Positions 49,624 to 64,000 of a stretch of DNA of 64,000 nucleotides are shown piece after piece (within the stretch, counting starts at the first letter, position 1; each line of letters begins with the position of its first letter). The notes under the pieces are model-generated. The model was given only the letters and a program-made list of their open reading frames with translations, was not told the origin of the DNA and made no database searches. Origin of the DNA: Klebsormidium nitens (Eukaryota; Plantae; Klebsormidiophyceae); the NCBI GenBank assembly GCA_000708835.1, contig DF236959.1, forward strand, positions 230,183-294,182, given 5' to 3'. Position numbers and translations under genes: made by a program.

Positions 49624-52600
49624 ATGGCGCCCACAGGTTTCAGAACGCACGCTGAAAGCCCGCTTCTTGACCAGCTGCCCACCTCTAGTTCCTCGCCCAG
49701 ATTCCGAAACAGCACCTCCCGCCCCAAGGCCTTCTCTAAGGCTCTCCCGCTGCCAATGCTGGTGAGAGAGAGGCCGCTGCGGGTAGCTTTTCTTGTCCTT
49801 TTAGCGCTCGTTCTCAGTTTCTTGGCGGTGGTGTCATGGGCGCATTTAAACCCCGACACGCGGCTCGGGAGAGAGATGCACTTCTTTGCGCCTGCAGAGG
49901 AGTGGCGGAAAGCGAGGGTGGCATTTGAAAAGGGGCAGTTTCGGCCGTTGCTAGGTGGGGACTCTCAGAGCGTATTGACAGCAGGGGGGAAGGAAGAGTT
50001 TGGAACGCAAGATGAGGGGCATCGAAATGAAGTTGTGGAGCTTGACAAACCCGAGTCGAGCAATGTTCATGAGAACAAAGTGCTAGGTGTTGCGCAAGAA
50101 GGCAATGTAAGAGAAAGTGAAGCAGACACTGAAAATACGGGCGCGTCAGTGGACATTGAAGAAGGCAAGACTACCTCTCAGGCCGACGTTCAAAATGAAC
50201 TGGGGGTTGCGAACAGCAGTAGCACTGCCCCCCCGGAGCCCCACCCAGTAGTTGCGTTTGTAATTAAAGCCTTGTCTCAGTTCGGCTTTGAGAAGGAGCC
50301 CACTTTAGAAGCGGCCCTCCTGTTGACCACGCCTCCTAAGTTCCCTGGCTCGTATTCTGAAAGTGGAGCGGGGAAAGATGATGACACCAGAAGGAAGGAA
50401 AGCGTCTCGGTACGCCAATCCTTGGAGCACAGCACTGACTTAGAAACAAGTCATGAAGTCCATTCGGAACCAGACTCTTCAGCAAACAAGGGTCAGAGCG
50501 AAGTCCCAATTACAACTCACGAACTGGGGGTGCCCAAGAACATGCGGAAGGGCACCCCCTTGGAACAGCTGAGGCGGGTTATGCCGGAGCGCCGGCCAAA
50601 CCCAATCCCTAACCCCGAGTTTTGGGCTAAGACTTACTATGGTAGCGGGAGTAGCATGAGTTGTGACCTGGGGGATGGGGCGTGGGTCGAGGACGCAGAA
50701 TTGGAGCCCCTGGAAACAGCGAATTGCAGGTATGATTTGGAATTGAATTCGTTGTCACATGATCGCATCGACGTCAAATGGTTTCGATGGCCCTATCTGT
50801 ATCTTTCTGGGTCATTGTATCTCAATTTTGGTCATGTACATCTCACTATCATTGTGAGGTGCGTGGGGGCCAGAGTCTTGCAACGGAGCGAACGGAAGCG
50901 ATTCGAGTGGCGAACTGGCACAGCAATCTTTTTGACTGTGTTCACGGCAAAAAACCGTTGACTCCCGTGCTCTTAAGATTGTGAATGTTAGCCCTCCAGT
51001 CATATTAGATTAGCACACCAGTCTCATCATTGCTCTCATCTTTTGACCATAGCCATCATTGAGTTGCACAAATATAATCAGGAGCTGTATGTCCTCATAA
51101 TTGCTCCGAGTCAACCACAGTGACCGTAGGTCAAGGACCCGCCAGAGTTGCAATTGGCCTTAAGCGCTTGAGGAGCCACATTATTGGGTACAGGTTGGCA
51201 TAAGGAGCCCCTTAAGCCAACCCTTACCAACTTCAAGAACGAGCGACCGGCGTCCCTGTTGAAAAGCGAGCAAATCCCACTGCTTGATCAGTAGCTCTCC
51301 ATTTCGCCGAGCAGGAAGTAATGAGAAAGAGACAGTCCAATCGATCCTGATTGCCTCGCTTCCAGATCGCCTTTGATGAAACAACAGCTTTTAACCGACA
51401 ACTCTGCTATGGACTCACCTTCTTTGGTCAGCAACCTCTGCTTCCATCGCATCCCAGAACTAACGTTCTGAGCCGCTGCTGACGTCACACCCTTTGGCTC
51501 CCCTCAGGTACACCGAGGGGGAGCAGTGCGCGTGGCGCAGGGAGTCGGTTCCTAACTACCGGTCGTTCCGGTGGCTCCCATACGATTGCGACCTGCCCTT
51601 CTTTGACGCAGAGTGAGTGCTTTGTGGCTTTGGTTCGCACGGGGCGTCTGATAAAATGCCATGTTCGTGGCGACTGTGAAGCCTTCAATGCACCTCTTTT
51701 GGTCGCCTGCTAAGTCCTTGATCGACACTCAGGCAGCGAGATCGAAAGCCGGCAACAAAGGTCTGGGAGGTCTGTCAAGCAACTATGGTGTGACGCTAGC
51801 GAACGCCGTTCTTAAAATGCGTTTGAGGATTCCATGTCGAGTCCTCTCAGGTCTTCTGATTTTTTGTATTGGAAGCTCCCTTGTAACTGCGAGTTACCGT
51901 CTTTCGTTTTGACACTGCCAGACAGGGATCGAGTTGCACTTGTCTGACCTTGGCTTTGACCAGGTCAGAAGCAGTCCTTCTTTCCAAGTGCCAGTCTGAC
52001 GGCTCAGGTCGAATACTGTTAAGGACGATTTGACTCGCCGAAGGCCCAGGCCCCTTATTTATCCTTTGACATCCTCCGACGAGATTGCTTTTGAAGGTTG
52101 GAACAGTTTCGAGTCTGGATGTACATGCTGTCAAAGCCTTCGTCGACCGCTTTCTCACTGTGGTATAGCCCACCCGTTCACTGAGGCTTTAGTTCCCGGC
52201 AACTTCTTATACCAGACTAAAGAGTCTGGAGCGGTCTTATCCGGAGCATTCTTCACCGCACTACAATGCTCCAAGTCGATCATCCGCAAGCCAGCTAAGT
52301 TTTGTTCTTTTCCTCTCCCCAGGTCGTTCCTCGAGCAGTGGCGCGACAAGACGGTGTTGGTAGTTGGGGACTCCCTCGGGCGAAATTTCTTCGAGGCGCT
52401 GCTCTGCCAGCTGTCAGCCGTTGGGCCGCTCGTTCCGTTGTCGGAAGCAAGCGACCGGGAAATAAGCGACCGGGAACAAAATGATCGGGACATGCGGGGC
52501 CAGGAAATGAGTGACGGGGTAGTGGACGAAAGGGAAGAGACTGACCGGGAGACGGGAGAAGGGGAAGCGAACAACCGGGAGAGGACGGATCGGGGGGCCA

Positions 52601-54973
52601 CGGAGCTGTTCTGGAGCGAGCGGTTCAACGTCACGGTGGGCCGGGTGACGTCAGAGTTCCTGGTGATGCGGGACACGAGCGCCGAGGAGCTCGAGAGGTT
52701 CGGCCAGGTGAGCGGTTACAAGACTTTATTATCAGAAACGTTTATGTTGGTCGGATTCATATCCTCGCAGAAACATCAAAAGACTCTCCGGGGAGCTATT
52801 CCTTGTTCTCCAACCACCCCCAATCCCTGGAAAGGCGGATTTCCCGTCGTTCGTCGCAACAACCCTCGTAGTGTGCTTGTAGTGTGATTCTGCTTTTCTG
52901 CTTTCTGCTAAATCGACGTCAACTCGCACAGTCGCCCCCCTTGGGCTGTAAGCAGACATTTAGCCAAATTGTTTCATCTACTGGGGGTCTATCAACAATA
53001 CGCCCAACCCCCTGTGCAGAAAGCGGGCAAGGACCGGTTCCTCTTGTCGCTCGACCGGTTGGATCCCGCGTGGGAAGCCCTCCTGCCGCGAATCGACCTA
53101 CTGATTCTCAACTCGGGGCACTGGTGGGTTTCGAAATCGAAGCGAAAAGCGTATCTGCTGGGGGGCGAGCTTCGACGAGAGCTAGATAGCTCGGAGGCGT
53201 ACAAGATGTGAGTGCCCCGCTTTCAGAGCTCGTGTGTTTTGAGGCCATTGTTTTGAAAAGCATCGATCGACATTCGAGGTCTTTTCCGTGTTGTGCAAGA
53301 GATTTTGATCAATAGGTAGCCGATGTGTTTGATCGACATTCGTGGGGGCTTAGGGTTTGGGTCACGGTGATCGGATAAAGACAAGGCGAGGAACTGTCCG
53401 AGAAAGAGAGGACTCTGGAAGGAACGGACAGGGAGTGGGCGTTCGTAAGCACTCAGACCGGCTCGTCCGCAAAGCCATCTGCGCCGCGGCTCCTTTTTGA
53501 ACCGTTCGAGCCTGAAGCTGATGTTGTCGAAAGTTTTTCAGCCATCTATCTTTGAGCTCGTTCGATTGGGCCTCTGAGCAGAGGACGCGTCTTTCCAGGC
53601 ACCAAAACGACGCGCGCTGATTGCATTGGGATACACAACGACGGACGCGAGAAGAAGCAGCCTCGACTATTCCGTTCTGAATCTCCTATTGCACACGCAC
53701 TTGGAGAAGAAACAACCGAAACCGTCGAAAAACTATCCGCTTCATCTTTACAAGACGCCCCGTTTCCTCCAATGTAAAGATGCAGACTTGTACGAATCGC
53801 TCTTACGCAGCGCCATGCGGCACGTGCGGGACGCCGTCGAGGGTTCGGGCTTCAAGGGCGTCGCCATGTTCCGGACGTTTTCGGACGCGCACTACCACAA
53901 GGGCGACTGGGACACTCCGGGGGCGAACTGCAAGAACGGACGGCCCGAGGAGACAATCAAGCTGTCTAGCAAGCTCTTGAGGTTCAATCTCAAAATCTCT
54001 GCTCCTATCTGTGTTTTAGGTGCGATGCTGGTAATTGTCTGTCTTCCATTCTAAGCAGAGAAAGGTGAAAGCTGTGTTTGAGCAACTTTGTTCCGTCTGA
54101 GAACGTTCGATGCCGAAGGAAGGTTGTTCACTGGCCGAAAGGGTTTCTAAGAGTTGCTCTATTTGCTTGATTGTCTTTTCCCACTTCTTATCTTCGTTTT
54201 CTACATTGCCTCGATCTTCTTCCTCTTTTCACTTGTGGTTGGGTACTTCTCTGCCTTTCATCCTTGTTTAAGGCTCGAGCCCACTCATAACATTTCGAAG
54301 TATTGCACGCAGATTCTGGCCGCGGTTCAGCCAAAAACGTTGTCACTTCGCGTTTGTCAGGCGCTTTCTGCTTGTCTCGTCTTCTCGTTTCTGTTCCGTA
54401 AGCAATCCGCACCGTCGTTGCCTTGCTTTCGATCTCCTCCGCTCGTATATGCGCTGTGTTGGGCTCAATCCGGCCTCCTCGCAAAATCGCGCAGCGATCG
54501 TAGAGGGACTTCTCTGCGAGGCAACGGAACGGCGCCATCGATTCGTTCTGTTTGATCGGACCTGTTGAGTGCGGCGCCAAGAGCCAAAGCGCAAAACTTC
54601 AACGGACTTGCCCAAGGAACTGCCCGACAAAAGCACCAACGTTGACATAACGCATTGATACTTTCGGCGCTTCTTCTGGGATAAGCTCTGTTCAGAACAG
54701 GATTTTGTGCACAGATTGGACTTTTCGGAGATGAGAGAAAGGGGTTCGATTCGGCGCTTTTTTGCCTCTCGCAGGTTTCTAAGCGTTCAGGAAGAGATCT
54801 TCAGCGGATCAGAGTTCCGCCTGATGGAGATAACGCGCCTGACCGAGTATCGGCACGACGGCCACGTCGGGCCGCGCAAGGACTTGGGCGGCAAGTGGGA
54901 CTGCACGCACTGGTGCGCGGGGGGAGTGCCCAACACGTGGCTTGACGTCATGCAGGCAATGCTGGACGCGTGA
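49624..54973 (+). CDS. TBL: Trichome birefringence-like (TBL/PC-esterase) cell-wall polysaccharide O-acetyltransferase; about 6 exons
   Basis: N-terminal TM anchor, long stem, SCDLGDGAWV, FRWLPYDCDLPFFDA, VLVVGDSLGRN (GDS), DLLILNSGHWW, FRTFSDAHYHKGDW and final DCTHWCAGGVPNTW (DxxH). Confidence 0.9.
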
Positions 54974-57923: not shown

Positions 57924-60338
57924 ATGGGCTGTTCCCTCGGCCTGACATCCCATGGAATTTTTGTTCCAAAAGTCGGCACGTGACCTGTTTGAGAGAAAGG
58001 AATTCGTGCCGATCGACGGAAAAGTCTCGTAATGCCAAAGCCGAGCGGCTCGAAGCATGTTTGCTTTTATTTTCCTCTGTCTCGTTGCTTATGCACGTGA
58101 AGTTCGTCCTGATGTCGATTAGCAAAGAAATTCTGTGAGAAGGAGCGTGTTTCCTCTCAACCTTGTTGCTTTACCGTTCCTTTCCGGAGCTTTTAGAATG
58201 CTTCGGAGTCTTTACGGGATCAAAGGATGTAAGGAGCGCCGTCCTTTGTTGAACCCTAACCAGGCTCGGTTAACGTAACAGTCCAATTTGGCTACTTCGT
58301 GCGTCTATGCCATTCTTCGTTGATCGACTTTTAGAACACAGGAATAACCAGATCCCTGTAAAAAGAGGTTCGAAGCCCAATACCTAGAAACAGCATGGAA
58401 TTGAGTTTGTACAATAGAAAATTGCGGAAACCGTAGCTACGTGCCAAAGGCAGTCTACGAACCAGTCCAAAGAGTTGAAGGCTTGCGGCGACCGTATAGT
58501 GACGTGTTACATGCAATCTAGAAAGTTGGTCTTATAGTCGCAAGTATGCGCATACTAAGGCTTTTTGCGTACCATCATGGCAAAGAATATATCATTGCGT
58601 GTGCAACGTGGCGCCGTTCAATCTTGAAGTACGGTAGCGTCAGAACCGTGCTCGGGCAAGATTCTTCATGCGGTTCGGCTGTGGAGATCCTAAACTGCAC
58701 GCTTCTACCGTACTAACTGCGGCCATGTTTCATAGACGGTCATGAACCGTGACCGCATCAACAACTTGAATATACATCATGCGCCCTTGGATTTAGTATG
58801 AACTTTACGAACGTCTCCCTGTGTCAGAGCCAGGGAGATGTTCTCCTCGGTCAGGCTGCTCACAAGCTATAGTAGGGGACAGCTTTCCCCTTCACCAGAT
58901 TCATGATCTGGGTACGTGGGAGACCCTTTTCTCCCCCTTACTAATATATAGGTTATGGACCCGGAATTCTCCCCGGGCCTCTATAATGATACCCGGGAAA
59001 ATGTAGTCTCTCTGCCGTGCCAGTCCCGGGGGCCGGCTGGAGCCCGGCAGAGGTGGGAGTGGGGGAGGAACTTAAGCCATGGAAGGGAGCCAACCCTTGC
59101 GGTGTGAGCGGATATGCGCGCATGCATACATAGTCAATTCCATCAAAGTGCGTCCGACACAGCTGGCGCGCACGGATCGGATGCAGCCGCGCCGCGCCGG
59201 CTCTTGTACTAATTCGAACTTCTTTTCTATCAGTTGACATCGAGCATGTCGATCACCCGTCACTGCAACTGTCAGTGTCTGTGCGTGCGGGACTGAACGG
59301 TTCAACACATATGACCGTGATGAACAGGAAGAAGCTTAAGGTTCATACTAGGTTCATAAATAATAGCGGGACGGTCGTTATTCGGAAGCGGAAACGACAA
59401 TGCACACGTTCCAACTTGGCCCACTTCATTTGCCTCCTTTTGGTTTCACATACGCAAGAACTGCAAACAAATAGATGGATGCAATAGGACGGGCCTATCA
59501 CCTAGCTAGCTTGAAAATCAGAAGTACGTAGTAGCCATGCTCAAGCACGGTTATTTGGGATTTGACTGCCATCTCAACTAACTGAGTGTTCCAGCAACCA
59601 TCCTCATATCGCATAGTTGAGGAAAGTGCCACGTGACTGTCTGCAATGCAACTCAAAACTATCAAAGTGACTAGATCGGAAGTCTCATGTCGAAAAGCTC
59701 GTCGTCGGAGCTTTCAGTCCTGCGTACAGGCGCCATATATCGCGCTAGAGCTCAGGTTCAACGAATGGTTGATATTTTCCAGCGTTGAAGCCGTTGTAGC
59801 CGACCTGCGTGCAAGAATTGTAGCTTTCAGTCCGAGCACGATGCAAAGCACATCTTGACATCTTGATAGGCATCGAGAGCCGAGAAGAATCTCGAAGAAG
59901 CTAGTGGAGGGTACAAACCGCCTGCGGGTTGAGACTGGTCATGGGCAAGTTCTGGCGACTGGTAAAAGTGTTTTTGAAAATTGGATTCTCCAAATAGTGC
60001 ATCATCCAGGCGCAACACGTCAGGAACAGTGACCCCAATTTAGCTTTGGCGGAAGAGACTCTTGTAGCAACGCGCACCTGGAGTTTCGACAGTTCCTCGG
60101 AACCCCAGTCTTTCTCTCGATTTTCAGTCCAAGCTGTGACGAGTTCGTCGTTAAACGCACAAGGCCCTTTGTGACGACTCAGGCTCAATTCGAATCACTT
60201 GCTATTTGTTAACTGGCAATGCATAGACTTCTGTTTCGAACCCGGCCAAACGCATCTTGGAACGGGCCGTCAGTCAAGCACTCGGAAAAACAAATAACTG
60301 TGCGCATCAAAGAAGGTATGTCAAGCATCGGATCTCAC

Positions 60339-63300
60339 CAGCTCAAGGTCAGCGTTCGGCTTCGTCCGGTCGTGGTGTGAGGGGTCGCTCACGTGAATGG
60401 CCAACTTGTCGTCTGCAATTTGCGCGGATTGTGTCAGCCAATTAGCTCGAACGTGTGGAAATGCTGTCGCGAATCTCCCGGCTCTGGGTTCATTACGTCC
60501 CTGGACTTTCGAGGCCAACAGAAACATGAATGTATCATTCGCATCATTCCCCTAAAAGAGTCTTTGTCTACTGTAGTTTTCTCGTCCCCAGACTTTGTCG
60601 ATCAAAGTAGCCCTTCTCGGGGAGTTTTTCTTCCACGTCAGATCAGTTTGAGTCCGTGCTCATTCCTCACGCATATCTTCTCCGGGCTACACAGCAGGCC
60701 GAGCCGTAACATCGTCAAGGGGTACGGCACGTTCAAGGCGGCGCAACTGCCAATGTGACACATTAGGAGACGGCTGATCCGAACACTCACCTGAGATGAC
60801 GTCACCTTTGGGTGGACCTTGAGGCAGCAGTACAACCGTGGGGAAGCTGTGGGTGTTCAGGCGGTTCCAGAAGACGATCCACGGCTTCTCTGACGTCAGT
60901 ATGGAGTCCCAGAGCGTCATGCAGTAATGGACGACCACGCCAAGAAGCGAGCTCCCAATGGACTGGGCGAAGATCCGGCCATCGATGTAGATTCTCGTCG
61001 CCCGGGAGCTGCCCAACAGATACAGAGCAGTCTGGACGCCCGCCTGGGGGATCGACCGGAGCAACAAATCCCATAGCCCCCGCGAGGCGGCATAGCTCCC
61101 GAAACTCAGAATTGCACACTTGTCAATTAGCAGGCACACGCCGAGGTTCTCGAAGACCACCAGAACGTCGTAGAGCACCACCCCGAGCAAGCCCACCGGC
61201 CACAATAACACCATCAGTATCAAAATCAGTATCCTGGCACGAATCTCCCGTTGCGAGCGACCAGAATTGGCCGCCAAACGGTCGACAGGAACGAATCCCG
61301 GCCACACCCAGGCGAGTCGAACGGTAGAGACCCCCAATGGCTGCGAAACGACCCAGCTCTTGGCGAGGATAAGGGCCAAAACCACGGTTGGCGCGAGGAG
61401 CGATGGGAGAAGGAGCCACACGGGCCATGCGCCCCAGATCTCAATCAGCACCTGCGGGGAGTCAGTTACAGCGCGCCCATGAGACTTTGAAAGGTTTGTC
61501 AGCGCACGTGCAGGGAGTAAGTTACAGCGCGCCCATCGAACCTCAACGTGACTACTACTTGTATCTGTAGCTGCGGATAATACAGCTAAGATTGTTCGGA
61601 CTTTTGTCAACGTAGGCCAACCGCAAAGTCGTGCTGCATGCCTAGCTGCTTGACACCAACTTTTGCCCCGGTACGTGGACCACCCAGCATGATCCCCCGG
61701 CCTGAGCAAAGTTTGCGCTGGGCCAAAATCGCGAGCCTATGATCTAGCCAAAATTCTGGAACTGCATCATTCGGAAACGACACCTAGTGCCAATAAACGC
61801 AAATAGAACCCAACTCTTCTCTCACTGCAAGCTCCACACTCAAGGCAAATTGTCCGAGCTTCAAACCTGGCTCTGAACTATTGATTTTCAGAGATAAACG
61901 ACTTCTTTTCAAGCAGCGCAATTCTAACCAGATTCGAGGCAGGCTTACCTTGATGTCCGTATACAAGTCATAATAAGAAATGGCGGTCCGTACAACGCTC
62001 CATACGTATGCCACAAATTTCGCCCCCTTGGTCTTGCGACCCTCAAGCGGCACCTGTTGGGACTTCTGGCGGCGAAGTTGCCACGTGGCAACAGCCCAGA
62101 CACATAGCGTCAGGAGGGGCAGGAGGGCAGCAAACGTGACATAAGCTATGATGACCACCGTGCGCGCCTCCGGGTTGCCGCACAAATTGCCCGACTGAAC
62201 GCGGGTGAAGCCGACCCCCGTGTACGCCGAGCCCCTGGGGCCAAGATAAATTTGGTCCAGGAAATCGCTGGTGTTGAGGAGGTAACTTCCAAAGGTGTTA
62301 ACGATGTATGGGACCACATACGAAGGCCCGGATCCTATCGTGTTAGGGTGACCGTTTGCGTAAACGACAGTCGTTGGCTGGTGCATCTTTAAGACAATGG
62401 CCGGTTGATCACCGTCCAGGAAGAGACTGATTCGGCCTAGGCACACCTTTTTCTTTGTCTCCTGGGACAGTTTGGGGCTTGACCCAATCAGGTCGACTGC
62501 ACACCCGGCCCCCTTAACACACGAGTCCCAGAACTTGATATCCTCCAGCCCCTTTTCGCCGACCCACTGGACGTACTGGCAGGAGAGGGGAAGCTTAGAC
62601 CAATCGGCGTTCTTGTCTCGCCCGGATATGCGGACGGATGACAGACTGGAGGCGTTGCTCAACCAATCGGGAACCGAGCCGGACAAGCCAACGGATCCTA
62701 GTTTACCGCAATCAAGAATCGCCTTGGGTAGAGCACCGGAAAAGCTGTTGTCATTGACATGCAGTGCGCTGAAACAACAGGCCCCCGGCACGCCGCATGT
62801 CATCGGCCCCGAGAATCTGTTATCGGACAAATCCAGAGACGCACTGTCAATCACCGCCTTCGGAGTCCCGCCCACTAGAGAAACCGGCCCCCAAAACAGG
62901 TTGTGGGATAGGTTGAGGGTTGCATAAGGTCTCGCAGTAATAAGGGGGCCTGGTGAACCCGATAGGAAGTTTGCTGACAGATTGAGTGACGCGAGCGATG
63001 AAGGGCGGGTCCAACTTGAAGGGATCGCACCCGAAAGGTTGTTGTTGGCGAGAGAAAGCGACTGGAGGTTCGTCAAATTGCACAGAGCAAGGGGGATGCC
63101 CTGCGAGAGGGCGTTTCTGGATAGATCGAGGCGTTGGAGCCTGGCAAGGCGTCCTAGCTCCGGGGGAATGGGCCCGGAGAGCTGGTTACCAGAGAGGTCG
63201 AGCGAGGTTAATTGGGTCATCTTTCCCAGCTCCGGAGGAATCCGGCCAAACAGCCCAAAGTTGGAGAGGTCAAGCGACGTCAACTGGGTCAATTGGCCAA

Positions 63301-64000
63301 ACTCCGGGGGGATGGTGCCGGACCACATGTTCTTGGAGAGACCAAGCGAGGTCAACTTGGTTAGACGGCCAAGCTCAGGGGGAAGGGCGCCGGACAACCT
63401 GTTGTTGGAGAGATCAAGCTTAGTCAACTGGGATAATTGGCCAAGCTCCGGGGGGATGGTGCCAGACAGACTGTTGTTGGAGAGATCGAGAGAGGTCAGG
63501 TTGGTCAGCCGGCCCAGTGAGGGGGGGATGGGGCCTGAGAGTTTGTTCTTCGACAGATCAAGAGTCCACAGGGAGACCAAGTTACCCAGCTCCGAGGGGA
63601 TGAGTGTGTCAAGGCTGTTGCCGCTTAGGTCGAGCTTTTGCAAATGGGAGAGTTTGCCAAGTGTGGGCGGAATGGAGCCTGAAAGAATGTTCTGGGCAAG
63701 GTTCAGCGAAGTAAGCCTAACAAGGTTGCCCAATTGGGGGGGAATCCCGCCCGACAATTCATTGTGGTCCAACCACAGGGTTCCTACTTTGTCCACCAAG
63801 TTGCCCAACTCCCAGGGAATAGGTCCCGACAAACTATTATTACCAAGGATAAGGTCCGCTAATTTTGTGAGTTTTGCCAACGCCGTGGGTATGGGACCCG
63901 TCAAGTTGTTGCTTGACAGTTCAAGTTGGGTGAGGCTAGCTAGCTCGCCCAACTCAGAAGGGAGGGGACCCGCAATATCATTGGTTGTGGCCACTATTAG
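60339..64000 (-). CDS. Extracellular LRR protein fused to a multi-pass (about 6-7 TM) XK-like membrane domain; 5' end outside the window
   Basis: About 17 plant-type LxxLxxLDLSxNxLSGxIP repeats, a Cys-containing juxtamembrane region and a first TM (VVIIAYVTFAALLPLLTLCVWAV). Exon ends YYDLYTDIK at 61949 and joins in phase 0 to exon 61451-60791, which carries further hydrophobic helices. A probable small exon follows at 60412-60339. The true stop is uncertain (about 60190-60280). Confidence 0.75.

Follow-up and report, generated by a model that had tools for sequence, protein, structure and literature searches.

The XK-related (XKR) proteins XKR9, XKR8 and Xkr4 are each built from a pair of related repeats, one N-terminal (ND) and one C-terminal (CD), with four transmembrane (TM) helices and a partly inserted helix per repeat (PMC8298096, PMC12334663). 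The hydrophilic TM3 has a kink, located at a conserved P-Q-L motif, and a buried cluster of acidic residues on TM1 and TM3 is a hallmark of the family (PMC8298096). The stairway residues, namely D26, D30 and E141 in Xkr8 and D125, D129 and E313 in Xkr4 (where the kink lies at P316), were reported to be important for scrambling, the ND vestibule was proposed to thin the membrane, and the family was described as conserved "from nematodes to humans" (PMC12334663). Here, we analyzed a 64,000-nt stretch of the Klebsormidium nitens genome (assembly GCA_000708835.1, contig DF236959.1, positions 230,183–294,182 of the forward strand; hereafter, the window), in which a gene on the minus strand encodes a plant-type leucine-rich repeat (LRR) ectodomain followed by a multi-pass membrane module. 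We consider it likely that this module, present as a single repeat, is distantly homologous to the N-terminal repeat of animal XK/Xkr proteins, and we refer to it as half-XK. The XK-related comparison set comprised the Pfam family PF09815, TC 2.A.112, and the proteins XK, Xkr4, Xkr8, Xkr9 and CED-8.

The product is almost certainly a type-I membrane protein, composed of a signal peptide, approximately 14–17 LRRs, a juxtamembrane ectodomain, a single-pass helix (TM0), a basic loop, the half-XK module and a tail. The XK-related and the plant LRR parts are each known; the novelty lies in their combination, with a single-repeat XK-like module forming the membrane portion of an LRR receptor. In a full-text search of the published literature, we found neither an LRR–XK fusion nor any green-algal XK-related protein described. 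Klebsormidium and other streptophyte algae serve to reconstruct the origin of plant surface receptors, and the present family links an LRR ectodomain to a module that is not a kinase.

Exons, introns and the public protein

The LRR open reading frame (ORF) enters the window at position 64000, with the 5′ exons and the signal peptide beyond the edge, and all features described for this gene are on the minus strand. A first-pass annotation of the window had claimed that the long LRR ORF does not truly end at its stop codon at 61784, but is spliced from a donor after YYDLYTDIK (61949) in frame to an exon at 61451–60791. Both claims are borne out by the sequence and by an annotated public protein. 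The K codon of ...YYDLYTDIK, the end of exon A, ends at 61949 and is followed by the donor GTAAGC (AAG/GTAAGC). Intron 1 (61452..61948; 497 nt, GT..AG) extends from this donor to the acceptor CCCCGCAG, which ends at 61452, and exon B opens at 61451 in frame with GTG CTG ATT GAG (VLIE, of VLIEIWGAW...). By comparison, unspliced reading past the 61949 donor yields 55 unconserved residues before the stop at 61784. Exon B (60791..61451) encodes the end of TM1, TM2, the half-inserted helix IH1, TM3, TM4 and the start of the cytoplasmic tail, and closes at 60791 with the donor G/GTGAGT. It is followed by intron 2 (60413..60790, GTGAGT...TTGCAG), exon C (60339..60412), which encodes tail sequence (DKLAIHVSDPSHHDRTKPNADLEL), intron 3 (59805..60338, GTGAGA...ACGCAG) and exon D (59745..59804), in which the final 19 codons are followed by the stop codon TAG (59747–59745).

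A word search with the exon-A translation retrieved P0010, a public K. nitens protein of 972 aa that was 100% identical over the 245 queried residues. P0010 contains the same exon A/B junction (...YTDIK-VLIEIWGAW...), together with the short exons 60412–60339 and 59804–59745. The exons were searched one by one, and all whole-protein analyses used the public P0010 record. Five related proteins (P0003, P0004, P0005, P0012 and P0015) are unbroken across the equivalent point, with the sequence ...TD(I/V)xVLxxVWGAWP.... In addition, P0027, a protein derived from a Trinity transcript of Klebsormidium subtile, is collinear with P0010 274–912 (32% identity) over a stretch that takes in LRRs, the junction and the module up to its end, and is RNA-level support for the LRR plus module architecture in this congener.

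We also considered whether the LRR and hydrophobic exons might come from separate transcripts, or from a decaying pseudogene, such that the annotated join would be an artefact of gene prediction. The RNA record agrees with such a view and weighs against ours: the first-pass annotation had proposed RNA-seq confirmation of the 61949/61451 junction, and in four sequencing runs over the locus, none of which is on record as RNA, no read crosses it. The only RNA trace of the gene is one exact 234-nt contig at 63128–63361 in the LRR exon, from a run presumed, but only as a guess, to be RNA; the other read matches at the locus are short pieces from paralogs. On the other side stand the canonical splice sites, a frame kept over four exons, the intactness of all conserved motifs, and the continuous order shared by eight named K. 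nitens paralogs and the K. subtile Trinity transcript protein, which together make an artefact exceedingly improbable. The locus is a real, intact gene.

Two observations on this region may be added. The last 29 bases of intron 1 (61452–61480, ATGGGCGCGCTGTAACTGACTCCCCGCAG) are nearly duplicated 56 nt upstream (61509–61536, ATGGGCGCGCTGTAACTTACTCCCTGCA); the upstream copy lacks the AG and, judged from its letters, is a putative decoy copy of the branch-point/acceptor region. Separately, contigs of 3.4–3.6 kb in all four runs (X1, X2, X4 and X8) match the TM3–TM4 loop motif at 60996–61024 with 3 mismatches. The same contigs also match an LRR piece at 63439–63457, as seen for X1 and X2; order and orientation agree with those at the locus, and 2336 nt separate the two matches in the contig. 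These contigs look like a paralog carrying LRRs and a half-XK module on one molecule, the RNA status of the runs being guessed.

Membrane module and the XKR fold

The C-terminal module corresponds to P0010 685–895. It is preceded by TM0 (62081..62161, P0010 638–664), recognized by hydropathy and as helix 167–202 of the larger structural model described below, and by a basic cytoplasmic loop (62021..62080) with 6 K+R in 20 residues. The first part of TM1, an amphipathic helix that carries D702-x3-D706 and ends in ...YYDLYTDIK, is encoded at the end of exon A (61949..62020). Two AlphaFold2 (AF2) models were built. Model 1 covered P0010:683–925 and used a 34-sequence alignment (pLDDT 87.3, pTM 0.82), and model 2 covered P0010:470–930, adding the juxtamembrane ectodomain and TM0 (pLDDT 85.3, pTM 0.80). 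In P0010:683–925, helices were placed at 2–30, 36–61, 95–128, 144–171 and 184–212. In both models the module consists of four TM helices and one half-inserted helix after TM0, to be set against the fewer than three helices that the first-pass annotation had named as speaking against its own assignment; the C-terminus is multi-pass, as it had claimed, and all of the hydrophobic segments it listed are present. The long middle helix at P0010 777–810 is broken at W-P-V-G in model 2, falls within the 153–158 residues matched to XKR structures, and, in these models, fits the half-inserted helix IH1. The modelled helices of the algal module follow the order of the XKR N-terminal repeat: TM1 and TM2, next a half-inserted helix, and then TM3, with its kink, and TM4.

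The models were compared exhaustively with 48,161 representative chains of the PDB using VIA-align. With model 1, the best match was XKR9 (7p16_A, chain 4–190; Z 11.2, root-mean-square deviation (rmsd) 3.2 Å, 153 aligned residues), followed by XKR4 (Z 9.4) and XKR8 (8xej_X, chain 7–203; Z 8.7, 158 residues, 21% identity), and the next chain after these three XKRs had a Z of 7.0. With model 2, XKR9, XKR4 and XKR8 again occupied ranks 1–3 (Z 12.1, 11.1 and 9.8; next chain, 8.6). For both models, 149–158 residues were aligned with an rmsd of 3.2–4.2, and coverage was confined to the N-terminal repeat (XKR9 2–190). The combined AlphaFold and Foldseek check suggested by the first-pass annotation gave a similar picture: the top two Foldseek matches of model 1 were XKR8 (probability 0.97 and 0.85; unrelated rows, ≤0.1), albeit at non-significant E-values. 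Good structural neighbours in the ESM Atlas were limited to short clusters labelled PF09815, of 156 aa (TM-score 0.76 by row) and 195 aa (TM-score 0.65 by row; rmsd 2.8 over 152 residues). These are protist single-repeat "XK-related domain-containing" clusters (PF09815 in 42–54% of members) of the same size and fold as the algal module when compared by structure, and their existence demonstrates that an XK-like repeat can form a unit on its own. Unlike the algal protein, the protist proteins stand alone, with neither an LRR ectodomain nor TM0.

At the sequence level, PF09815 was the commonest weak Pfam match among 34 module slices. The relative P0046 matched PF09815 at E 2e-4 (20.9 bits, profile 3–174 of 337), K. 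nitens P0038 at E 1.7e-3 (17.9 bits, profile 4–190) and P0036 at E 0.38. The Pfam check named in the first-pass annotation therefore had a divided outcome, as this protein itself was unmatched and three relatives matched the first half of PF09815 below the threshold. Pfam searches of 65 distant relatives at E≤0.01 detected LRRs only and no PF09815, and a word search with the 34-sequence alignment, aimed at XKR proteins carrying a Pfam label, returned only unlabelled family members.

The motifs lie where the XKR fold would place them, and the order DxxTD, (E/R)SxPQxxxQ, SxxxSLLG given in the first-pass annotation checks out. As in XKRs, two acidic residues with i/i+4 spacing (D702 and D706) are found on the first helix, an equivalence of residues that rests on helix order and spacing. 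The D-x3-D pair is retained in 22–23 of the 34 members of the family alignment. The motif R-S-I-P-Q (R840–Q844; 61044..61058) lies in TM3; P843-Q844 corresponds to the P-Q kink of XKR TM3 (P843 is retained in 30/34 members and Q844 in 21/34), and R840 occupies the position of the Xkr8 stairway Glu. D836, four residues before R840, provides an acidic residue four positions ahead of the stairway position. The most conserved motif of the family, G-S-S-R-A-T-R-I-Y-I-D (60981..61013), with invariant or near-invariant columns in alignments A1 and A2, lies in the predicted outer TM3–TM4 loop, and paralog contigs from the sequencing runs match exon B solely at this motif. The predicted inner loops contain 6 and 4 K+R, versus 0 and 2 in the outer loops. 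Together with the signal peptide, the ectodomain, TM0 and the basic loop, these counts predict that the N-terminus of the module is cytoplasmic, as in XKRs, with the G-S-S-R-A-T-R-I-Y-I-D loop facing outward; the cytoplasmic tail would comprise approximately 75 residues.

We regard the module as a probable single-repeat XK homologue because the fold ranks, the Atlas neighbours, the repeated sub-threshold matches to the first half of PF09815 and the placement of the motifs on the right helices agree, although each is modest alone. The XK-related assignment made in the first-pass annotation is sustained to this extent; what is present is one repeat rather than a complete XK-related domain. Several observations weigh against this interpretation. 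The module is one repeat only, lacking CD, IH2, IH3 and the C-terminal regulatory helix, and it carries R840, three residues before the Pro, where XKRs carry Glu. No Pfam or NCBIfam match for the module was obtained even at E≤10 (Pfam: exon B, P0010:640–972, P0010:683–925 and six C-terminal slices; NCBIfam: exon B), and the family profile returned nothing at E≤10 from PDB sequences. The PF09815 gathering score of 24.8 bits was not reached, the best relative scoring 20.9 bits. Foldseek E-values with model 1 were ≥0.13, neither model gave a Foldseek match at E≤0.001, and the fold tool warns that a Z below ~13 in helical bundles may reflect a common arrangement.

These points are those that would be expected if the module were an unrelated green-algal four-helix bundle, whose likeness to the XKR N-terminal repeat is convergent and whose short motifs are due to chance: sequence searches with this protein were not significant, its Z of 9–12 falls within the flagged range, and the Foldseek E-values are high. 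Convergence is nevertheless improbable in our judgment, because it does not readily account for three XKR representatives at ranks 1–3 of 48,161 chains with two models and always by the N-terminal repeat, for PF09815-labelled clusters as the only good Atlas matches, for PF09815 as the most frequent weak Pfam match and always by its first half, or for the D-x3-D and (E/R)-x-x-P-Q motifs on equivalent helices.

Relatives, receptor comparison and possible output

The first-pass annotation had suggested a search of algal and land-plant proteomes for LRRs joined to the same domain; database searches revealed a multi-gene family. Among 1.84 billion representative proteins, a profile of the module matched 124 at E≤1e-3; of these, 52 had E≤1e-10 and 33 had E≤1e-30. 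A word search with exon B alone recovered nine relatives with E-values between 1.9e-32 and 5.7e-13, one of them being K. nitens KFL_000780015. Pfam detected LRRs in 28 of 65 distant members. The eight named K. nitens members are P0003, P0010, P0018, P0020, P0026, P0036, P0038 and P0049; other named members belong to K. subtile and to the chlorophytes Trebouxia spp., and the remainder come from metagenomic or Logan assemblies. No land-plant protein was found among the family members looked up. The algal module differs from the XKR family in occurring in green algae and in lying below the Pfam threshold, as well as in following, within one polypeptide, an LRR ectodomain and an additional TM helix. 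It is present as a single copy per protein (hmmsearch, 164 family members); an apparent pair of copies in some relatives ("2 stretches") was rejected, as the two stretches are pieces of one copy.

P0010 resembles FLS2-type LRR kinases and receptor-like proteins (RLPs) in its plant-type extracellular LRRs (LxxLxLxxNxLSGxIP), signal peptide and type-I orientation. Unlike receptor-like kinases (RLKs), it has no kinase domain: precomputed Pfam annotation of P0010 contains LRR families only, and searches of the C-terminal parts detected no kinase, in keeping with the earlier remark that none was visible. Unlike RLPs, which have a single TM helix and a short tail, P0010 has five further membrane helices after TM0, and it is distinguished from both RLKs and RLPs by a conserved juxtamembrane ectodomain. 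The automatic name of P0010, "LRR receptor-like serine/threonine-protein kinase FLS2", has no basis other than the LRRs; it is misleading and will propagate. An analogy may be drawn with Xkr8–basigin and XK–Kell, in which a single-pass protein with a large ectodomain lies beside an XK-type membrane domain, as LRR-TM0 and half-XK would do within one polypeptide in P0010. The comparison goes no further than analogy: basigin, which has Ig domains, and Kell, a type-II protein resembling proteases, are encoded by genes of their own and have no relationship to LRRs.

At the R840 column, the 34 aligned members carry E (11), R (10) or Q (8), and the K. nitens paralogs fall into a Glu type (P0003, P0018 and P0038) and an Arg type (P0010, P0020, P0026 and P0036). 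The first-pass annotation had remarked that the usual Glu of ESxPQ is Arg here, which R840 confirms; with Arg in the stairway position, the mechanism of this paralog, at the least, is unlikely to match that of Xkr8 exactly. The Glu/Arg/Gln split could mean complementary pairing or functional divergence. The data establish the exon–intron structure, the domain order, the resemblance in fold, the positions of the motifs and the presence of several family genes; the mechanism that follows is a proposal. Considering that TM0 would set the N-terminus of the module in the cytoplasm as in XKRs, and that the N-terminal repeat of Xkr4 and Xkr8 holds the acidic vestibule tied to scrambling and thinning, we propose that a ligand on the LRR ectodomain would alter the pairing of half-XK modules, whether into homodimers or into combinations of Glu-type and Arg-type paralogs. 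Such pairing would rebuild a two-repeat XK-like unit, which might then act on partner binding or, by scrambling or thinning, on the arrangement of lipids nearby, and the output would be a change in membrane lipids rather than phosphorylation. A half-XK LRR receptor with this pairing mechanism is, on balance, the overall explanation that we favour, even though dimerisation, ligand and lipid activity are purely inferred, which counts against it.

The main rival retains the same architecture and treats half-XK as a membrane anchor or interaction platform that does not act on lipids, with RLP-like signalling through partner kinases or other membrane proteins, by analogy with XK and Kell or Xkr8 and basigin. 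This is a possible reading, if clearly the less probable one. The lack of a catalytic domain and the presence of only half of the XKR fold are consistent with it, as is the stairway position, where Arg here and Gln in 8/34 members argue against a conserved acidic mechanism; moreover, the most conserved motif is the outer loop GSSRATRIYID, which fits protein–protein or ectodomain contact. Against it, the module has five helices, is conserved between Klebsormidium and Trebouxia and places buried polar residues at XKR positions, all of which exceeds what an anchor would require; no partner is known.

Within the favoured half-XK receptor, lipid scrambling as the output is rather unlikely, the claim being an inference. 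Ligand-binding domains fused to half-XK would be a possible example of ligand-controlled lipid scrambling, and a natural protein with an ND only, the repeat that carries the acidic vestibule, would be a minimal test object for the scrambling or thinning mechanism. The strongest form of the proposal, a new class of surface receptor in which a ligand joins two single-repeat modules (possibly Glu-type and Arg-type) into an active scramblase that signals by lipid asymmetry, has in our view only a slim chance of being correct. If it were true, the animal two-repeat Xkr fold would have arisen by duplication of a single-repeat ancestor surviving in algae and protists.

Ectodomain and neighbouring features

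The plant-type LRR ectodomain (62666..64000, cut by the window end) matched Pfam LRR_1 (E 2.8e-53), LRR_8 and LRR_4. The first-pass annotation had given about 17 LRRs; the repeats are present, and approximately 14 of them are countable in the part within the window. The N-terminus of P0010 has a hydrophobic, signal-like segment at residues 12–30. P0010 joins an upstream exon (...NLTHLCL) to LSGPIPWELG near 63832, yet the frame remains open and LRR-like for 56 codons upstream to the window edge (NNLTGPIPTALAKLTKLADLILGNNS, 63833–64000, minus strand). As read from the sequence, the public P0010 gene model may omit two LRRs, or alternative splicing may occur there.

Between the LRRs and TM0 lies the juxtamembrane ectodomain (62162..62665, P0010 470–637), a region predicted to be β-rich, with conserved Cys residues, that is also conserved in P0004, P0005, P0012, P0014, P0015 and P0027. 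Its motif GxAYTGVGFxRVQxGNLCGNPEA is common to the whole close family, and model 2 shows β strands here with pLDDT mostly >90. P0010 470–637 had no convincing match in the PDB, the only match (Z 6.4) being to the RPP1 LRR-ID region, and Foldseek with the 461-residue model was uninformative for the fold of this region.

Elsewhere in the window, an ORF on the plus strand (52030–52887) contains ...VLVVGDSLGRNFFEALLCQL..., which we take to resemble the GDS motif of plant trichome-birefringence-like (TBL)/PC-esterase proteins. This ORF probably belongs, as an exon, to a neighbouring gene unrelated to the one described here.

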